IMG/VR virus record: IMGVR_UViG_3300042868_007959 | Coordinates: 62,001-126,000 of that record | Direction: 5' to 3' (one strand) | DNA length: 64,000 nucleotides | Part shown: positions 5,668 through 43,807 of the stretch, piece after piece | Layout of the letters: each line of letters opens with the position of its first letter | Numbering within the stretch: position 1 is the stretch's first letter | Notes under the pieces: generated by a model | What the model saw: only the letters and a program-made list of their open reading frames with translations | What the model was told of the DNA's origin: nothing | The model's database searches: none | Position numbers and translations under genes: made by a program

Positions 5668-6318
5668 TTAATATTCCAAACTTTTAGGTAAAAATAATAG
5701 GGTTGGGTTCTTCTTTTGAATATCTAAGTTTGGGTATTCCTCTTTAAATTTCATCACGTCAAACTTCTTAGTGATTAAATGGTACCCATTTTTAGTTGGG
5801 ATAATAGCTTCAATCTTTGGACCAACTTCATGTCCAATTGGTATTCCTACCTCGTCAAATTTAACTTTGGTAATTGGATTACATTTATATTCAATAAATG
5901 CCATCATTACTGGACTAGGTATATGACTATCATCGATATCTATAATCCACCTCTTCTCGTGAGTTTTAATTTGACCAACAACTGAGTCAAATAAACCTTG
6001 TTGTTTATCTACACCATCTCTAATACGTTCTGCCAGTATCGCCAACATATTAAGGGAAACATCCTTATGGTTTTGTTTCTGAACATGAATATATGCCCTC
6101 GCCTTAAACATTTCACAAAGTTGTTTAATCTCGTCATACCTCTTTTCAAGATGATCAATAGATTCTATACAGTAAGTTTTAATTGTTCTTACTGACTGAT
6201 GATTATCTCTTTCCCCTTCAGGTTGATCCTTTTTACGTTTAAAAACATATAACATATAAAAATCACCTTTATCAGTGAAATGTAATAGTGGTTTTATTAA
6301 TTCTAAGTTATCTATCAT
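5668..6318 (-). CDS. Conserved phage protein with AEP/primpol-like motifs
   Basis: WIIDIDD (hhhDhD) and TKNGYHL (sxH) resemble AEP motifs I and II. Confidence 0.6.
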   Translation of the reverse strand: MIDNLELIKPLLHFTDKGDFYMLYVFKRKKDQPEGERDNHQSVRTIKTYCIESIDHLEKRYDEIKQLCEMFKARAYIHVQKQNHKDVSLNMLAILAERIRDGVDKQQGLFDSVVGQIKTHEKRWIIDIDDSHIPSPVMMAFIEYKCNPITKVKFDEVGIPIGHEVGPKIEAIIPTKNGYHLITKKFDVMKFKEEYPNLDIQKKNPTLLFLPKSLEY

Positions 6319-7370
6319 AGTTTCCTAAATTTTGGTTTTAAAGCACTCCATATAATTTTATCATAATCTTTACCATCCCACATCGCAAACATAATTGCCT
6401 TTGCAATTGGATGGTGATTCTTAATATGTTCCGCAAATTCTTTCTTAGTTGGTTCTACTTCTATATCACCGTATTTACCAAATCTAAAATAATCATAAGT
6501 TTTACCTAGTTGGTTATAGTATTGGTACCAATGATACCCCAAACTACTGGCGTAAGTTTTAATCTTACCATAAAATTCATCAGGAACATCTTTAAGAAAA
6601 TCTTCTATTTTACCACCACTAGATAAAATTTCCCATACAGTTGTAGTTGATACATTTGTCATTATTTTATGTAATCTGAGATATTCTTCACCCTTTATCT
6701 TCATTCTGTCACCATTAGAAAATTTAACTACATAACCCTCTTCATCATCTTTTATTATATTTTTTAAGGTAGTAAAATCAGTTATGCCATCATATTTTTT
6801 AACTACTCTGAATCCTATATTTTGAATTAAATTTTTTAATCTTAAATCTACATCTTCACTATGTAAGACAACTTCATTTTCGGTTTTAGTATTTATCATA
6901 CCTAATAACACTAAATCCTCAAAATCATACTGTACCACTATTCGATTATCATCGTATATGATTTCAAATAAATAAGTATAATCTTTATGTAACTTATCGT
7001 AATCATATTTTTGTAATAAATCAAAACCCTTTATAGATTGTTCAGAAGTGAATGAACCTCTAGTTGCCAATACCCATTGATCACCATAATGAAATAGAAT
7101 TCCTAATGAACCATCCATTTTATCATAAACGTCAAATTCAGATGTGGTAGTATGTTTACCTTCTTCCATATTAAAGAATTTTTTAAATGGTCTACCAACA
7201 ATATCACCATCGGAATTTGTTACTAATCCCCTACACATCAGAGTTATATTATCCCATAATGATTCGTATTGTACTTTTTCACTATAATTCCAAATAGTTA
7301 GATCCAAAGTAGGGTGAACTTGTTTATGTAATAAACCCTTATCAAAATATTCATTTAAAATTTCATTCAT
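6315..7370 (-). CDS. T4 Rnl1-type RNA ligase
   Basis: CRGLV, PFKKFFN, motif I KMDGSLG, LFEII, EGYVV, KIKGEEY. Confidence 0.92.
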   Translation of the reverse strand: MNEILNEYFDKGLLHKQVHPTLDLTIWNYSEKVQYESLWDNITLMCRGLVTNSDGDIVGRPFKKFFNMEEGKHTTTSEFDVYDKMDGSLGILFHYGDQWVLATRGSFTSEQSIKGFDLLQKYDYDKLHKDYTYLFEIIYDDNRIVVQYDFEDLVLLGMINTKTENEVVLHSEDVDLRLKNLIQNIGFRVVKKYDGITDFTTLKNIIKDDEEGYVVKFSNGDRMKIKGEEYLRLHKIMTNVSTTTVWEILSSGGKIEDFLKDVPDEFYGKIKTYASSLGYHWYQYYNQLGKTYDYFRFGKYGDIEVEPTKKEFAEHIKNHHPIAKAIMFAMWDGKDYDKIIWSALKPKFRKL

Positions 7371-7444: not shown

Positions 7445-8959
7445 TTAAACATTTTCTAAAACCTTAGTCAATCTTTCTCTAATTTGAGTAAGGGTTGTTT
7501 GGTTATAAAATACACCATCTTCATAGATTGCTTTTAAATCACCAGTATTTTCACCCGACCAAGTTTGTTGATCAACTAATTTATACCCACCTTCACCTGT
7601 TGTTACTCTAAGTAATCCAGTTGCAGATTTTTTGGTACCATCGTCAGTGATTGGATCTTTGAATATTTCACGACCCTCAATTGAGAATGATGGACTTCCT
7701 GACTCCGCCATATGTTTAACTTCAACATAGGTTGCTTTCATTGCGAATCCAAATGTATCACGTGTGTTGTATTGGTAAGTGAATGAACCGATACCCAAAA
7801 CAACATTTGTTGATGCAAATCCTTTTGCTTCTAATCTAGCGCAAATTTCATTTGCTCTATCGATTGTAATTGAGTCGCCATAGATTGCTCCGATATGTGG
7901 ATCAAGTACTTTATAACCTTGTTCGTTTATTGTTCCACCGAATACATCCCAAAGCAATTCAATAACACCTTTAAGTTCAGGCATTAATTCGGTTCCTTTT
8001 TCATTACCTAATTTAATTCCACAAATAATATCAACTGGATCACCAGAGTCAGGACGAATAACCAATTTACCATCACGACTCATAATTTCTTCTTTCAAAG
8101 TAACTACGTGTTCAGTACATACTTTCCACAAGTCCCATGTATCGGATACTACTGAAAGGATTCCAGTTGGGTATGTTTCTAATAATCTACGGAATGTTTC
8201 TATTTCATCTTCTTTACCACCAGCACACATTACTGAATGTTCTGTCGCATTTACTGAACCACCAACAAAACCTTCTTCACCGTAATATTTACGAGCCCCA
8301 TAAATTGCTGGAAGTGAATCTGTTCCTGAGAATGATGTTAGATGTCCAATACCTGATGAAATAGTTGCATCGATTGAGTCTAATCCTCTCATTGAGAAGT
8401 CGTGTCCTTGCCAATCAACAAACCAAGCTCTTTCAGTATCGGTTTTTTCTTGCCAAGATGTTAATACCTTTCTGTAGTTATGTGCAATGGTTGCTGAAGT
8501 CATTGGTTTCCAAAGTAAGTTAGAGATAATCGTCTCCAAATAATTAGTTACCCAATAAAAATCAGGATGTGTATTGTAGATTGTTAACACAGGAATCTTT
8601 TCCCCAATTACAGAACCCTCCTCAATTGACTTTACCTTAATAGGTAAGTATTGTAAATCCCAAAGAGCTTCAAAATGTGATACATCATAATCTGTGTTAA
8701 GATACATAGATAATTCTTTTTTCATTTCTCCACAAACATGTTCTTTTGGTTGGTGGAAGAAATCTTTCTCGAATGATTCATGAATTATTTTCATAACCAT
8801 TTGTTGACCAAAAGACACTATCTCTTTACAGTGTTTTGGTGCGTGTTTCAAACTTCTAGGTGTGAAATTTGAATAGACTAATGTTGTACCCTTTGGATAC
8901 TGCTGATGATGTCCTGTTTTGTAACCATCTGTTAAAAGTAACGGATTGATGTTTCTCAT
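7445..8959 (-). CDS. nadV: Nicotinamide phosphoribosyltransferase-like (NAMPT/Namat)
   Basis: LLTDGYKTGH, HDFSMRG, NATEHSVM, SVVSDTWD, IRPDSGDP, IYGDSIT, GIGS, KKSATG. Confidence 0.95.
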   Translation of the reverse strand: MRNINPLLLTDGYKTGHHQQYPKGTTLVYSNFTPRSLKHAPKHCKEIVSFGQQMVMKIIHESFEKDFFHQPKEHVCGEMKKELSMYLNTDYDVSHFEALWDLQYLPIKVKSIEEGSVIGEKIPVLTIYNTHPDFYWVTNYLETIISNLLWKPMTSATIAHNYRKVLTSWQEKTDTERAWFVDWQGHDFSMRGLDSIDATISSGIGHLTSFSGTDSLPAIYGARKYYGEEGFVGGSVNATEHSVMCAGGKEDEIETFRRLLETYPTGILSVVSDTWDLWKVCTEHVVTLKEEIMSRDGKLVIRPDSGDPVDIICGIKLGNEKGTELMPELKGVIELLWDVFGGTINEQGYKVLDPHIGAIYGDSITIDRANEICARLEAKGFASTNVVLGIGSFTYQYNTRDTFGFAMKATYVEVKHMAESGSPSFSIEGREIFKDPITDDGTKKSATGLLRVTTGEGGYKLVDQQTWSGENTGDLKAIYEDGVFYNQTTLTQIRERLTKVLENV

Positions 8960-12425: not shown

Positions 12426-13160
12426 TTATAATTCAAATGTGGGTTTTAACCAAAGTCCTCTACTGAATATTAATTTAGTAAAACCTGGTATTCTTTGTTC
12501 CACCATACCAAATAAAGTTAATGTCGCCACAGTATCATGTTTCATCATTTTTAAAACTTCCTCTCTGATTCTTTCTGCAGATACAACATCTTTAAGTTTA
12601 TCCATTATTTCAGGTTGTTCCATAGCCCTAAAAATAGACTGGTGTATGAAGAATCCTTTAGTGATAGAAAATCTTAATGCCCTAAGAAATCTGAGTGGAT
12701 CATCCATCATTGTTTGTTCGGCAGGTAAAGGAGTTTTTAGTAGTCTCGCACTTAAATGACCTTTACCGCCAAATAAATCAATTAGATTCCCATTTTCATC
12801 TTCCGCCATCGAATTCAATGTGAAATCTCTTCTAATTAGATCATCTTCTAATGTCCCTAATTCTAAAATAGGTTGTCTAGTCCCTTCTTTGTAACCGACC
12901 TCTTTTCTTGCGAGAACAAAGTCCGCAACTAATCCTTCGTTAACATCACCTTTAGGAAATTTAGCTCTGATAGTGAACATCTCTGGAGTAGAAAGGAATA
13001 TAGTAAACTCTTTATGTTCCATCCATTGTTTCATTATTTCGAAACCTTCATCTACTGTTCTATCTATGTTGTCGAGTACAAATGTGAAGTCAATATCTTT
13101 AGATTCAACACCTAAGATACTATCTCTTACACAACCACCAACTTTATATATCTGAGGCAT
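12426..13160 (-). CDS. cca: CCA-adding tRNA nucleotidyltransferase (class II, short)
   Basis: VGGCVRD, KDIDF, RRDFTLN, DLFGG, DDPLRFLRA, SAERIREE; adjacent to CCA-less tRNAs. Confidence 0.88.
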   Translation of the reverse strand: MPQIYKVGGCVRDSILGVESKDIDFTFVLDNIDRTVDEGFEIMKQWMEHKEFTIFLSTPEMFTIRAKFPKGDVNEGLVADFVLARKEVGYKEGTRQPILELGTLEDDLIRRDFTLNSMAEDENGNLIDLFGGKGHLSARLLKTPLPAEQTMMDDPLRFLRALRFSITKGFFIHQSIFRAMEQPEIMDKLKDVVSAERIREEVLKMMKHDTVATLTLFGMVEQRIPGFTKLIFSRGLWLKPTFEL

Positions 13161-13717: not shown

Positions 13718-13878
13718 AATTAGCGGAGATTTCATCCCATCCATTGATCACCCAAGGACTCGTTTCTAATGTATTTGGCACTCCGCCATTGTAAGTTTTC
13801 TGTTGCTTACGCCCTCATTCGTGGACTTCCGACATCCCAATGAGTTTTACCGTCCTATCGGAGTCAGGTAACCGCTTG

Positions 13879-13970
13879 TAGTCAGGACAGGACTCGAACC
13901 TGTATGTACAGTTATACAGAACTGCACATCCCTGTATGGATATTTGCGTCTACCATTTCGCCACCTGACT
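13879..13970 (-). ncRNA. tRNA-scaffold element F (non-canonical anticodon arm)
   Basis: AGTCAGG/CCTGACT acceptor, Leu-type D arm, ACAGG-TTCGAGT-CCTGT T arm; 42-nt insert with two hairpins. Confidence 0.8.
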
Positions 13971-16401: not shown

Positions 16402-16518
16402 TAGTCAGAACAGGATTCGAACCTGTGTTTACACTTTACTTGTATTAGTTGTGTCCGATAGATTGGGTATCAATACATTTCCCGCACCACCTGCTCTTAA
16501 CCACTGAGCTACCTGACT
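16402..16518 (-). ncRNA. tRNA-scaffold element C
   Basis: AGTCAGG/TCTGACT acceptor, class-I D arm GCTCAGTGGTTAAGAGC, ~66-nt insert, ACAGG-TTCGAAT-CCTGT. Confidence 0.8.
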
Positions 16519-16612: not shown

Positions 16613-16737
16613 TAGTCAGGACAGGATTCGAACCTGTATGATAACTTATGAGCAGTCTTAACGGGTCTTTCGAGGTTACTCGCGTTATCTTTACTATTAA
16701 CCTTTATTCATGCGTCTACCAATTCCGCCACCTGACT
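16613..16737 (-). ncRNA. tRNA-scaffold element B
   Basis: AGTCAGG/CCTGACT, GCGGAATTGGTAGACGC, 74-nt insert with GATAAC/GTTATC stem, canonical T arm. Confidence 0.82.
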
Positions 16738-16953: not shown

Positions 16954-17035
16954 TAGTCAGGACAGGATTCGAACCTGTAACATAACAATCGCTTTCAACC
17001 TTCTAGTTAGCGTCTACCAATTCCGCCACCTGACT
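16954..17035 (-). ncRNA. tRNA-scaffold element A
   Basis: Frame identical to B; 31-nt insert without a canonical 7-nt anticodon loop. Confidence 0.8.
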
Positions 17036-37445: not shown

Positions 37446-37623
37446 GATCTCTCTTCACCTTTAATTTCTCATTATATTCTGGCGAATCGAAAACTACCAA
37501 ATCCCAATTACCGTAAAACTTTGGGTTAGTCATAGGACATTCATTAGATTCCATAAGTTCTTTGTTAAACTTATCTGACATTTCTTTCGTATAATTTACA
37601 ACAAATGGAAGTTTTGAGTTCAT
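37426..37623 (-). CDS. Hypothetical protein
   Basis: ORF track. Confidence 0.6.
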   Translation of the reverse strand: MNSKLPFVVNYTKEMSDKFNKELMESNECPMTNPKFYGNWDLVVFDSPEYNEKLKVKRDHVTEKN

Positions 37624-37794
37624 AATCTTTTTATCTATAAAGTAAAATTAATAAAAAAATCCGAATCTGCCAAATTTTTTTATATAAATATTTGTTAAAA
37701 ATAAAAAAGTCCCGAATTAACGGGACTTTAAAGGGCCGATAGGATCACTATCAACTTCCACCACTTCGTTTTTAAGGAACAAAGAAACCTAATG

Positions 37795-38192
37795 TGGAGA
37801 TGGAGGGAGTCGAACCCTCGTCCAATCAAATTGCCATTAAAAATTCATTCACAAGCTTAGTTCATTTTTCTTAATGAACAAAATATTTGGTTTTATTTAT
37901 AACATGGTTACCAACAACCCTGTTTCGATAATTGTTTAGAGAGTTTTACCGTCAACTCTATTTTTTACACCTTTCTGTTTCTAGGTAAGTGTGACCCACC
38001 GATTAAACTAATTCCATTAATTCAATCTCTTCAACCACCGCTGAGCGAGTGATAGAAGTTGGGATACTCATCATATCCTCTGTGTTGTATGCGTTTGCAT
38101 TTATATTTTGATAGGTGTTTAAGGGTTTCCATCTAACCCTGCTTGCATCATTTCAAACTCAACCTTTGACTGTCAAATCCAAAACCATCCCC
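37795..38192 (-). ncRNA. ssrA: tmRNA
   Basis: 5' GGGGATGGTTTTGGATTTGAC; 3' GAGGGTTCGACTCCCTCCATCTCCA; G3:U70; resume context ATAAAT-GCA; tag ORF 38003-38098; no encoded CCA. Confidence 0.93.
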
Positions 38193-38194
38193 AG

Positions 38195-38208
38195 TTTTCA
38201 AAGAACTT
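38195..38208 (-). promoter_or_regulatory. boxA-like element
   Basis: AAGTTCTTTGAAAA, 2 nt upstream of tmRNA. Confidence 0.6.
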
Positions 38209-38386
38209 TTCTTTATTTTATCTTTAGTGTATAATATTCTATCCATCCATTCTCTATCATCATAACGATCTTTTTCTCTATATTTTTCGTCTTCGTATAT
38301 TTTTTTAGATGCTCCCATATTTAACACTTATTATATATATACAAATATATATACTTTTTTCCATAAAAACAAATATTTATAATAAA

Positions 38387-38719
38387 ATGTCATTAAAATT
38401 TTTAAATATAATAAACGAAGAAAAAGAAAGTTGCAAATATCAGATTCGTGATATAGGTGGTGACGTATATTATAAAAAATGTAAGGGTAATTCTAAATGG
38501 ATCTTTACTGATGAGGTGGACTTCTTAAAGAACTCTAAAAAATCTAATATAGAAAAATGGGAGAAACCTAAAGAAAAAAAATCCAAAATTAGACAATTAG
38601 ATGTCCCACAAAAAAAAGGGAATAAATTAGAAGATTTAAAAATCTATTATACTAATCTATCCCCAGATAATTATGAAATCAAAATAGAAGGTGGTAAAAT
38701 TATAATTCTTCCATCTTAA
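38387..38719 (+). CDS. Hypothetical protein
   Basis: ORF track 38309-38719; likely start MSLKFLNIINE at 38387 after ATATTTAT. Confidence 0.72.
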   Translation: MSLKFLNIINEEKESCKYQIRDIGGDVYYKKCKGNSKWIFTDEVDFLKNSKKSNIEKWEKPKEKKSKIRQLDVPQKKGNKLEDLKIYYTNLSPDNYEIKIEGGKIIILPS

Positions 38720-42811: not shown

Positions 42812-43807
42812 TCAAATTTTTAATGATTTTATTTTTTCTTTTTCTTCTTTATCTATATTTGAAGGTATGTCAACCCATATTTCTAATAACATATCCCCTG
42901 TCATATTATCCCTTACAAACCCTTTATTAGGAACTCTTAACATTGTACCTACTTTAGTACCTGAAGATATTTTAAATCTTATTTTTTTATCCATAGTATC
43001 TACCTCAATAGAATCATTACCTAATACTAAATCCTTATAGGAAAGATTTACTTTCTGGTATATGTCTAATCCCACCCTTTTAAATTTTTCATGTAGAATT
43101 TGTACTACATTAATTAATAAGTCACCTTCTAAACCATTCCTAATTGCGTTACCCATATTATAAACTCTCAATGTTTCACCATCCATAATTCCTTTAGGTG
43201 TATCAAATTCAAATGTCTTATCTTCTTTAATTACACCATTACCTACACAGGTACCACATTTTTTTGTAATTATATTCCCTTCACCATTACACTTAGGACA
43301 GTGAACAGTACTCTGCATTTTACCAAATGGGGTATTCTGAACTTGATTAACCATACCAATCCCATTACAAGTGTCACAACTAATACTATCACCACCAGTC
43401 CCACCACAAGGTGTACATTTTACAAATTTTTTATATATAATTTTTTTATTCGACCCATTATATATTTCTTCTAAAGTGAGTTTAAGATTTATCCTTATGT
43501 CCCCGCCTTTGGATCTCCTATTCTTAATACTACCGTAAAAAGAGGATAATATGTCTTCCATATTATCACCAGCAAATGGATTAGTCCTACCATCTGCAGT
43601 ACCAAACCTATCATAATTTAATTTTTTTTCTTTATCGGACAATACCGAATACGCTTCCGCAATAGATTTAAATTTTTCTTCTGACTCTTTATTATCTGGA
43701 TTTAGATCTGGATGATGTTCTTTAGATAGTTTCCTATACGCCTTTTTTATTTCAGTTTCATCGGCATTTTTACCCACACCTAAAATATTATAATAATCTT
43801 TACTCAT
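42812..43807 (-). CDS. dnaJ: DnaJ chaperone
   Basis: [11 protein letters not shown], four CxxCxGxG repeats, C-terminal domain. Confidence 0.96.

Follow-up and report, generated by a model that had tools for sequence, protein, structure and literature searches.

Genes for transfer-messenger RNA (tmRNA, ssrA) are carried by approximately 2.3% of phage genomes (PMC9004378). The phage tmRNAs listed by Hudson et al. include those of the Bxz1-like phages, phage G and DS6A (PMC4131195), and huge phages can carry both a tmRNA and SmpB (PMC7162821). In the mycobacteriophage Wildcat, the tmRNA is the most abundant lytic transcript (PMC7474061), and the roles suggested for the ssrA of marine myophages are selective tagging or keeping the hijacked machinery in working order (PMC9004378). 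As called by ARAGORN, the tag of Bxz1 (NC_004687) comprises 25 residues, is strongly acidic and ends in Ala-Leu-Val, and the tag of phage G comprises 13 residues and ends in Gln-Val-Ala. The host genus of Bxz1 uses a short tag ending in LAA. To our knowledge, phage tmRNAs have appeared in listings for two decades, with hardly any study of their tags.

Among 67 bacterial tmRNAs, chosen by sharing the 3′ sequence of the phage tmRNA described below, the median tag length is 9 residues; 57 of these tags end in Ala-Ala and none ends in Val. The three long tags in this set, of 25-31 residues, all come from Patescibacteria/Saccharibacteria. In a small and unselected sample of 48 tmRNAs on viral contigs, collected with a tag-blind pattern and including host genes at prophage junctions, eight tags have at least 20 residues and five end in Val. 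On three IMG/VR contigs retrieved with this pattern (L337, L354 and L357), which may be phage or prophage-host junctions, the tags have 20-31 residues; two are strongly acidic and one ends in Val-Thr-Val.

An intact-looking tmRNA in an uncultured jumbo myophage

The window analyzed here, a stretch of 64,000 nucleotides, corresponds to bases 62001-126000 of a 253,879-bp IMG/VR virus record with an estimated completeness of 78% and a GC content of about 29%. The record encodes a major head protein of the T4 type as well as baseplate wedge proteins. Its nearest cultured capsid, from a Flavobacterium phage, shares 40% identity, which places the virus among distant, uncultured jumbo myophages. The nearest capsid in GenBank belongs to LR756508, a 484-kb uncultured huge phage, in which two Rfam tmRNA matches (L284 and L287, 72 and 58 bits) were seen; ARAGORN calls only one tmRNA there, with an implausible 8-residue tag.

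ARAGORN identifies a single tmRNA in the window, a one-piece ssrA gene at 37794-38192 on the minus strand. The corresponding Rfam match to RF00023 extends over 37792-38192 and covers the full model (1-374) with 113 bits (gathering score, 47) and an E-value of 2e-43. The gene lies approximately 100 kb from either end of the record and 5.4 kb from a tRNA array, an arrangement that recurs in a relative whose 289-kb genome is complete and has terminal repeats. A host ssrA captured at a prophage-host junction was rejected as its source, as the gene sits deep inside a virus record with capsid and baseplate genes. Similarity of the 3′ tRNA-like sequence is found mostly with Bacteroidota and is confined to that domain.

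The 5′ strand of the acceptor stem, GGGGAUG (38186-38192, minus strand), contains G3 of the G3:U70 alanine identity pair and forms seven of seven pairs with the 3′ strand at 37796-37802. Together with the T arm (37803-37819), whose stem pairs at five of five positions and occurs in four covarying versions in relatives, this strand makes up the segment 37796-37819. The discriminator A is located at 37795, and the gene encodes only the first C of the 3′ CCA. Upstream of the resume codon, pseudoknot 1 (PK1) can be read from the sequence at 38110-38140, followed by the frame-setting bases AUAAAU (38099-38104), with U at -5 and A at -4. These two bases correspond to U85 and A86, which set the frame in E. 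coli tmRNA (PMC2481249), so that the initial annotation was correct in describing a standard context. Between helix 5 and the tRNA-like domain, Rfam aligns the region of pseudoknots 2-4 at low posterior probability.

The tag reading frame runs on the minus strand from the resume codon GCA (38098-38096), to which the consensus resume codon of RF00023 aligns, through 31 codons to the stop codon TAA (38005-38003). The initial annotation had proposed a tag of 31 residues encoded at exactly these positions, and the tag called by ARAGORN (coding part 95-190 of the gene, i.e., 38098-38003) is identical to it letter for letter. Translation likewise bore out that the tag is acidic, with a net charge of -5, and that it ends in Glu-Leu-Val. 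It thus lacks the ClpX-type degron, in which Ala-Ala with a free carboxylate follows a hydrophobic residue at the C-terminus. According to the initial annotation, this reading would be overturned by another resume codon or frame that yields a canonical degron. Three-frame translation shows that only the tag frame is open: stops interrupt the +1 frame after 8 codons and the -1 frame after 22, and nothing degron-like is encoded in either; alternative frames were rejected on these grounds.

Two hairpins are located within the frame. Codons 14-23 form a 30-nt hairpin (38029-38058) that is absent from the 24-residue relatives described below; it appears in the minimum free energy fold, with z = -2.9 for the tag region, and falls into the extra columns of the window-type sequences in our alignment A3. 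The last eight codons form helix 5, a 12-bp hairpin at 38001-38027 whose 3′ strand contains the stop codon. The same gene and frame, with 0-3 amino acid changes, occur on independent viral and metagenome contigs, ruling out an assembly accident, and contigs from different samples, at least five besides the present record, carry near-identical copies. We conclude that the RNA is a genuine, intact-looking phage tmRNA. A pseudogene was rejected, being contradicted by the full-length Rfam match, the copies in different samples and the intact stems.

An intrinsic terminator (37706-37729, minus strand) follows approximately 65 nt beyond the 3′ end of the tmRNA and is the sole terminator-like site in 37500-38500. 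Its stem differs in sequence in the variants L122 and L147, yet its pairing is kept. The intervening 65 nt or so (~37730-37793, minus strand) are near-invariant in three window-type contigs and better conserved than parts of the tmRNA itself, and could represent a structured trailer or a small RNA. At the other end of the gene, a small ORF (38148-38327, minus strand) overlaps the first 45 nt of the tmRNA and stops there. Its counterpart in L122 (1860-2033, minus strand) has a conserved protein sequence, the two products measuring 57-59 residues. If the ORF and the tmRNA are co-transcribed, cutting out the tmRNA would leave the ORF with an mRNA devoid of a stop codon and thereby create a substrate for trans-translation. 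The arrangement can be likened to the smpB-ssrA overlap in Carsonella (PMC4131195).

The window contains 28 tRNA genes according to ARAGORN, and about 30 are cited for the record. Other genes encode an Rnl1-type RNA ligase, NAMPT, a full-length DnaJ with zinc-finger domain and two DNA methylases. A CCA-adding-type nucleotidyltransferase is encoded by an ORF at 12426-13160 on the minus strand (PF01743, 66.8 bits, at G000:C1:74738-75148). As the tmRNA gene provides only the first C of CCA, this enzyme is relevant and could complete the 3′ end. Around the tRNA arrays, the ligase, NAMPT, nucleotidyltransferase and DnaJ form an RNA-repair and host-takeover set (6315-7370, 7445-8959, 12426-13160 and 42812-43807). 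The tRNAs, the CCA-type enzyme and the RNA ligase fit a module for translation upkeep. Odd tRNA-like genes were seen at 13878-13970, 16402-16518, 16613-16737 and 16954-17035. One of them has a four-base anticodon as called by ARAGORN; three are Rfam tRNA matches that ARAGORN does not call, two of which are 117-125 nt long, suggesting inserts or introns.

Relatives of the tmRNA and the derived ELV ending

Viral and metagenome contigs, searched by capsid and by sequence pattern, yielded 21 further distinct tmRNAs of the same family, bringing the total to 22. A perfect 7-bp acceptor stem is present in all of them, with position 5:68 occurring as A-U, G-C or C-G, as are the G3:U70 pair, a perfect T stem in four compensated versions, U(-5)A(-4) before the resume codon and a stop codon inside helix 5. 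Stem 1 of PK1 switches from GGG/CCC to GGA/UCC between lineages, and stem 2 of the outlier G049 has a wholly different sequence with its pairing kept. G049 was missed by ARAGORN; its tag was read by hand and is backed by the ARAGORN call on the close relative L365. The covariation of the stems, together with the invariant G3:U70 pair and frame-setting bases across the 22 sequences, indicates a family under structural selection rather than a relic.

Among 49 contigs related by their major capsid protein (MCP), one tmRNA was found, most of these contigs being fragments too short to reach it. A degenerate DNA pattern of the first ten codons of the window tag had no match in viral contigs, owing to differences in codons 6 and 9 of the nearest relatives. 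A DNA search of the cultured-phage collection, in near and distant mode, matched no more than 47 nt of the T arm. In relatives of the AVAA type introduced below, a GOLLD RNA (RF02032, 260-272 bits) adjoins the tmRNA and tRNA arrays, at L112 6933-7342, L113 962-1384, L114 4217-4628, L116 4369-4778 and L118 7432-7854; in the window, no GOLLD match reached the Rfam gathering score.

All 22 tmRNAs encode long tags of 21-31 residues with a net charge of -3 to -5. Sixteen distinct sequences encode 24 residues and two encode 25, both ending in Ala-Val-Ala-Ala (AVAA); tags of the G049 type have 21-22 residues and those of the window type 31. The AVAA ending, and with it the canonical Ala-Ala degron, is present at 27 of the 33 clade loci. 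Across the 16 distinct 24-residue tags pN/pS amounts to 0.40, and to 0.19 over the last eight codons; the overall value points to purifying selection on the tag peptide itself. The internal Glu-Asp-x-Met motif (E-D-x-M) of these relatives is kept in the window tag, whereas the tail differs. When the 24-residue tag was used as a protein query against 401 sampled Bacteroidota genomes, only chance-level matches inside long ORFs were obtained.

In a tree calculated with the tag masked, the three sequences ending in ELV form one branch (support 92/100) nested in a group that otherwise consists entirely of AVAA types; the tree is midpoint-rooted only, and the ELV branch is long. Its placement shows the ELV ending to be derived and to have arisen once. 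Helix 5 is made up of the last codons in both tag types, and its 3′ strand holds the stop codon at a distance of two bases from the foot of the stem. In the AVAA types, the Ala and Val codons themselves build a G-C-rich inner stem, which covaries from GCAG/CUGC to GCUG/CAGC through synonymous changes. In the window type, this inner stem is replaced by the longer, mostly A-U stem of 12 bp, which encodes the new tail.

Between the window and its nearest variant, L122, the only two synonymous differences in the tag constitute both halves of one C-G to U-A exchange in the hairpin at 38029-38058. The only difference of variant L147 is E26G, by which an A-U pair of helix 5 becomes G-U and pairing is kept. 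Other changes alter residues and lie in a loop or in the weak outer stem. In total, two synonymous and three non-synonymous differences separate the three variants, all of them structure-neutral or compensatory. With its rebuilt helix 5 and a hairpin inserted into the tag frame, the ELV form looks like the outcome of remodelling at the RNA level. Such a pattern fits RNA pairing better than peptide conservation as the explanation, three variants being too few for certainty or for a measure of selection on the ELV peptide. The AVAA ending of the sister lineages, the single derived ELV branch and the RNA-level nature of the changes weaken the idea of a designed novelty. The frame has, on the other hand, stayed open through a net insertion of 21 nt and the rebuilding of helix 5, which could equally mean that the peptide still matters.

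The clade thus offers a clean comparison, in which the same RNA in the same setting carries a conserved 24-residue AVAA tag on dozens of contigs and an ELV tag in one sub-lineage. This contrast bears on whether such phages need the proteolysis half of trans-translation or ribosome release only, and also on whether the conserved acidic core has a reader of its own.

Probable ribosome rescue and the fate of tagged proteins

A search for partner proteins returned no SmpB family match in the record, nor in five relatives including the complete 288,673-bp genome with terminal repeats. No gene for ClpP, Lon, a ClpX-type AAA protein, Tsp or a member of the RF-1/ArfB family was found in the record, and no SspB-like match either. 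Rescue and any degradation would consequently depend on host proteins. Given the incompleteness of the record, an SmpB or protease gene may lie in its unseen part; in the case of SmpB alone, the complete relative speaks against this possibility. As judged from gene content, dependence on host SmpB, and hence competition with the host tmRNA, is a reasonable expectation, and to this extent the competition for SmpB put forward in the initial annotation is upheld. Its suggestion that tagged products are redirected, stabilised or functionalised drew no support from our tests.

We estimate a probability of about 0.6 that the selected function of this tmRNA is ribosome rescue during infection and that its odd tail is a tolerated by-product of RNA remodelling. 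The tag would then be a lineage-specific, RNA-driven derivative of the long acidic tag common to the phage clade. The route up to ribosome release follows with confidence from the anatomy of the RNA, and we infer charging, the use of SmpB and timing within it. Transcription would run to the terminator at 37706-37729, the 5′ end would be cut at G38192 and the 3′ trailer trimmed, and CCA would be completed by a CCA-adding enzyme of either the phage or the host. After charging by host AlaRS via G3:U70, host SmpB and EF-Tu would bring the tmRNA to ribosomes stalled on broken mRNAs, which should be abundant in an infected cell. Translation is predicted to resume at GCA 38098 and to end at TAA 38005-38003, upon which the ribosome would be freed. 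The truncated protein would have gained 32 residues, i.e., the charged alanine and the 31 encoded ones. As no phage SmpB was found, the phage tmRNA would share or take over host trans-translation.

The ancestral tag, ending in AVAA, would have been a proteolysis signal. In the branch leading to the window, its C-terminus would have been rewritten as helix 5 was rebuilt from A-U pairs. The resulting ELV end, hydrophobic and without Ala-Ala, is probably a poorer signal for ClpX. We propose that such weakening was tolerated because the phage needs rescue and not proteolysis. Withey and Friedman reportedly found in 1999 that E. coli tmRNA supports phage growth by ribosome release even with a non-degradable tag.

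Alternatively, in the sense of the initial annotation, the tag could be a purpose-built signal with a new reader, i.e., another protease or adaptor, or it could keep chains soluble or stable to the benefit of the phage. The relatives strongly conserve the internal motif, which suggests that the tag has a specific reader, and the E-D-x-M motif has survived from the 24-residue relatives in a frame that remained open through the insertion. Long acidic tags recur in unrelated phage tmRNAs, as in that of Bxz1, which is net negative and ends in ALV although the host genus uses a short LAA tag. Several tags of 20-31 residues are present on other viral contigs, and nothing like the 24-residue tag was found in the sampled Bacteroidota genomes. 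However, the record yielded no match for any of the candidate proteases or for an SspB-like adaptor, the sister lineages keep the standard AVAA, and the changes in the ELV group track RNA pairing and not the peptide. In addition, the 25-31-residue tags of Patescibacteria show that tag length alone is not phage-specific. On balance we regard a new reader as possible but doubtful.

A broader version of this idea holds that phage tmRNAs of unrelated lineages, i.e., the aquatic jumbo clade, Bxz1 and those on other viral contigs, have arrived by convergence at tags that are long, acidic, amphipathic and unlike those of their hosts, sometimes without Ala-Ala, and by which the products of trans-translation are re-labelled. 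We put this forward tentatively and with some scepticism. If true, the phage would gain, beyond added rescue capacity, a signal that is read by a different protease or adaptor or is hidden from ClpXP, and the AVAA and ELV sister lineages would represent a natural switch between two fates. Phage tags that are read differently from host tags might also serve as orthogonal degradation tags.

The opposite scenario, in which nothing is redirected and the tag acts as an ordinary, efficient degron for ClpXP, ClpAP or Lon in the true host by virtue of its hydrophobic end and unstructured length, appears unlikely to us. Mycoplasma long tags are Lon substrates, and the Val-terminated ssrA variants AAV and ASV are still degraded in E. 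coli, albeit more slowly; both facts favor an ordinary degron. tmRNA tags are read by several proteases, including these three (PMC8012679), and like nearly all known tags this one has a hydrophobic last residue (PMC4131195). Glutamate as the third-last residue and the lack of Ala-Ala nevertheless depart from the needs of E. coli ClpX, and the sampled bacterial tags end predominantly in AA (57 of 67) and never in V. It is far less probable still that the RNA is mainly a decoy, which sequesters the SmpB of the host and switches off its trans-translation while tagging is incidental. In favor of a decoy, no phage SmpB was found, and mycobacteriophage DS6A encodes a molecule reduced to the tRNA-like domain, a kind that can inhibit tmRNA (PMC4131195). 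A decoy would need neither the mRNA-like part, which is wholly kept with covariation, including PK1, the frame-setting bases, the open frame and the stop codon in helix 5, nor purifying selection on the peptide of the relatives. A decaying gene copy or an assembly artefact with a frame that is long by chance has a negligible probability in our view. While an open frame of 31 codons in AT-rich sequence is by itself only moderately improbable, the full-length match of 113 bits, the near-identical copies on at least five other contigs and the integrity of every stem tested speak against it. Ribosome rescue with a tolerated, remodelled tail remains our preferred reading.

Comparison with known tmRNAs

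With the one-piece tmRNA of the E. coli type (SsrA, RF00023) the window tmRNA shares a tRNA-like domain with G3:U70, PK1, U(-5)A(-4) followed by GCA and a frame that ends in helix 5, as well as putative further pseudoknots and a length of approximately 400 nt. In contrast to the bacterial gene, it is encoded by a phage in which no SmpB gene was found, and its tag has 31 residues instead of about 10, is strongly acidic, ends in ELV instead of LAA and contains an extra in-frame hairpin. Long tags of 20-31 residues are likewise known from Mycoplasma, Chlamydia and Patescibacteria; unlike the window tag, these end in Ala (FA, YA, SA or AA), and the cellular genomes encode SmpB.

Melnitz and the marine pelagimyophages resemble the phage studied here in being lytic aquatic myophages with an ssrA of their own (PMC9004378). 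Their tmRNAs, however, are circularly permuted two-piece molecules of the alphaproteobacterial type, some under a glutamine riboswitch, whereas that of the window is a one-piece RNA. Bxz1 and other cluster C phages likewise have a one-piece tmRNA beside a tRNA array and a long acidic tag that ends in Leu-Val and is unlike that of the host (listed in PMC4131195). No sequence relationship between the Bxz1 and window tmRNAs is detectable; they differ in host phylum, tag and Rfam score (74 versus 113 bits).

The AVAA tmRNAs of the same uncultured clade (e.g., L113, L133 and L148, with tags of 24-25 residues) belong to the same family and occur in the same genomic setting. Like the window tmRNA, they have PK1, the upstream context, the geometry of helix 5 and the internal acidic motif, and they differ from it in ending in Ala-Val-Ala-Ala, in lacking the inserted hairpin and in the G-C-rich inner stem of helix 5. 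Seen against these systems, the tag is less unusual than the initial annotation implied, given the acidic tag of Bxz1 ending in ALV and the long or Val-ended tags in the viral-contig sample (8 and 5 of 48). Since such tags occur elsewhere on viral contigs, that of the window is extreme yet not isolated among phage tmRNAs. The window tmRNA is a well-supported further example of phage tmRNAs with similarly odd tags that are already on record.
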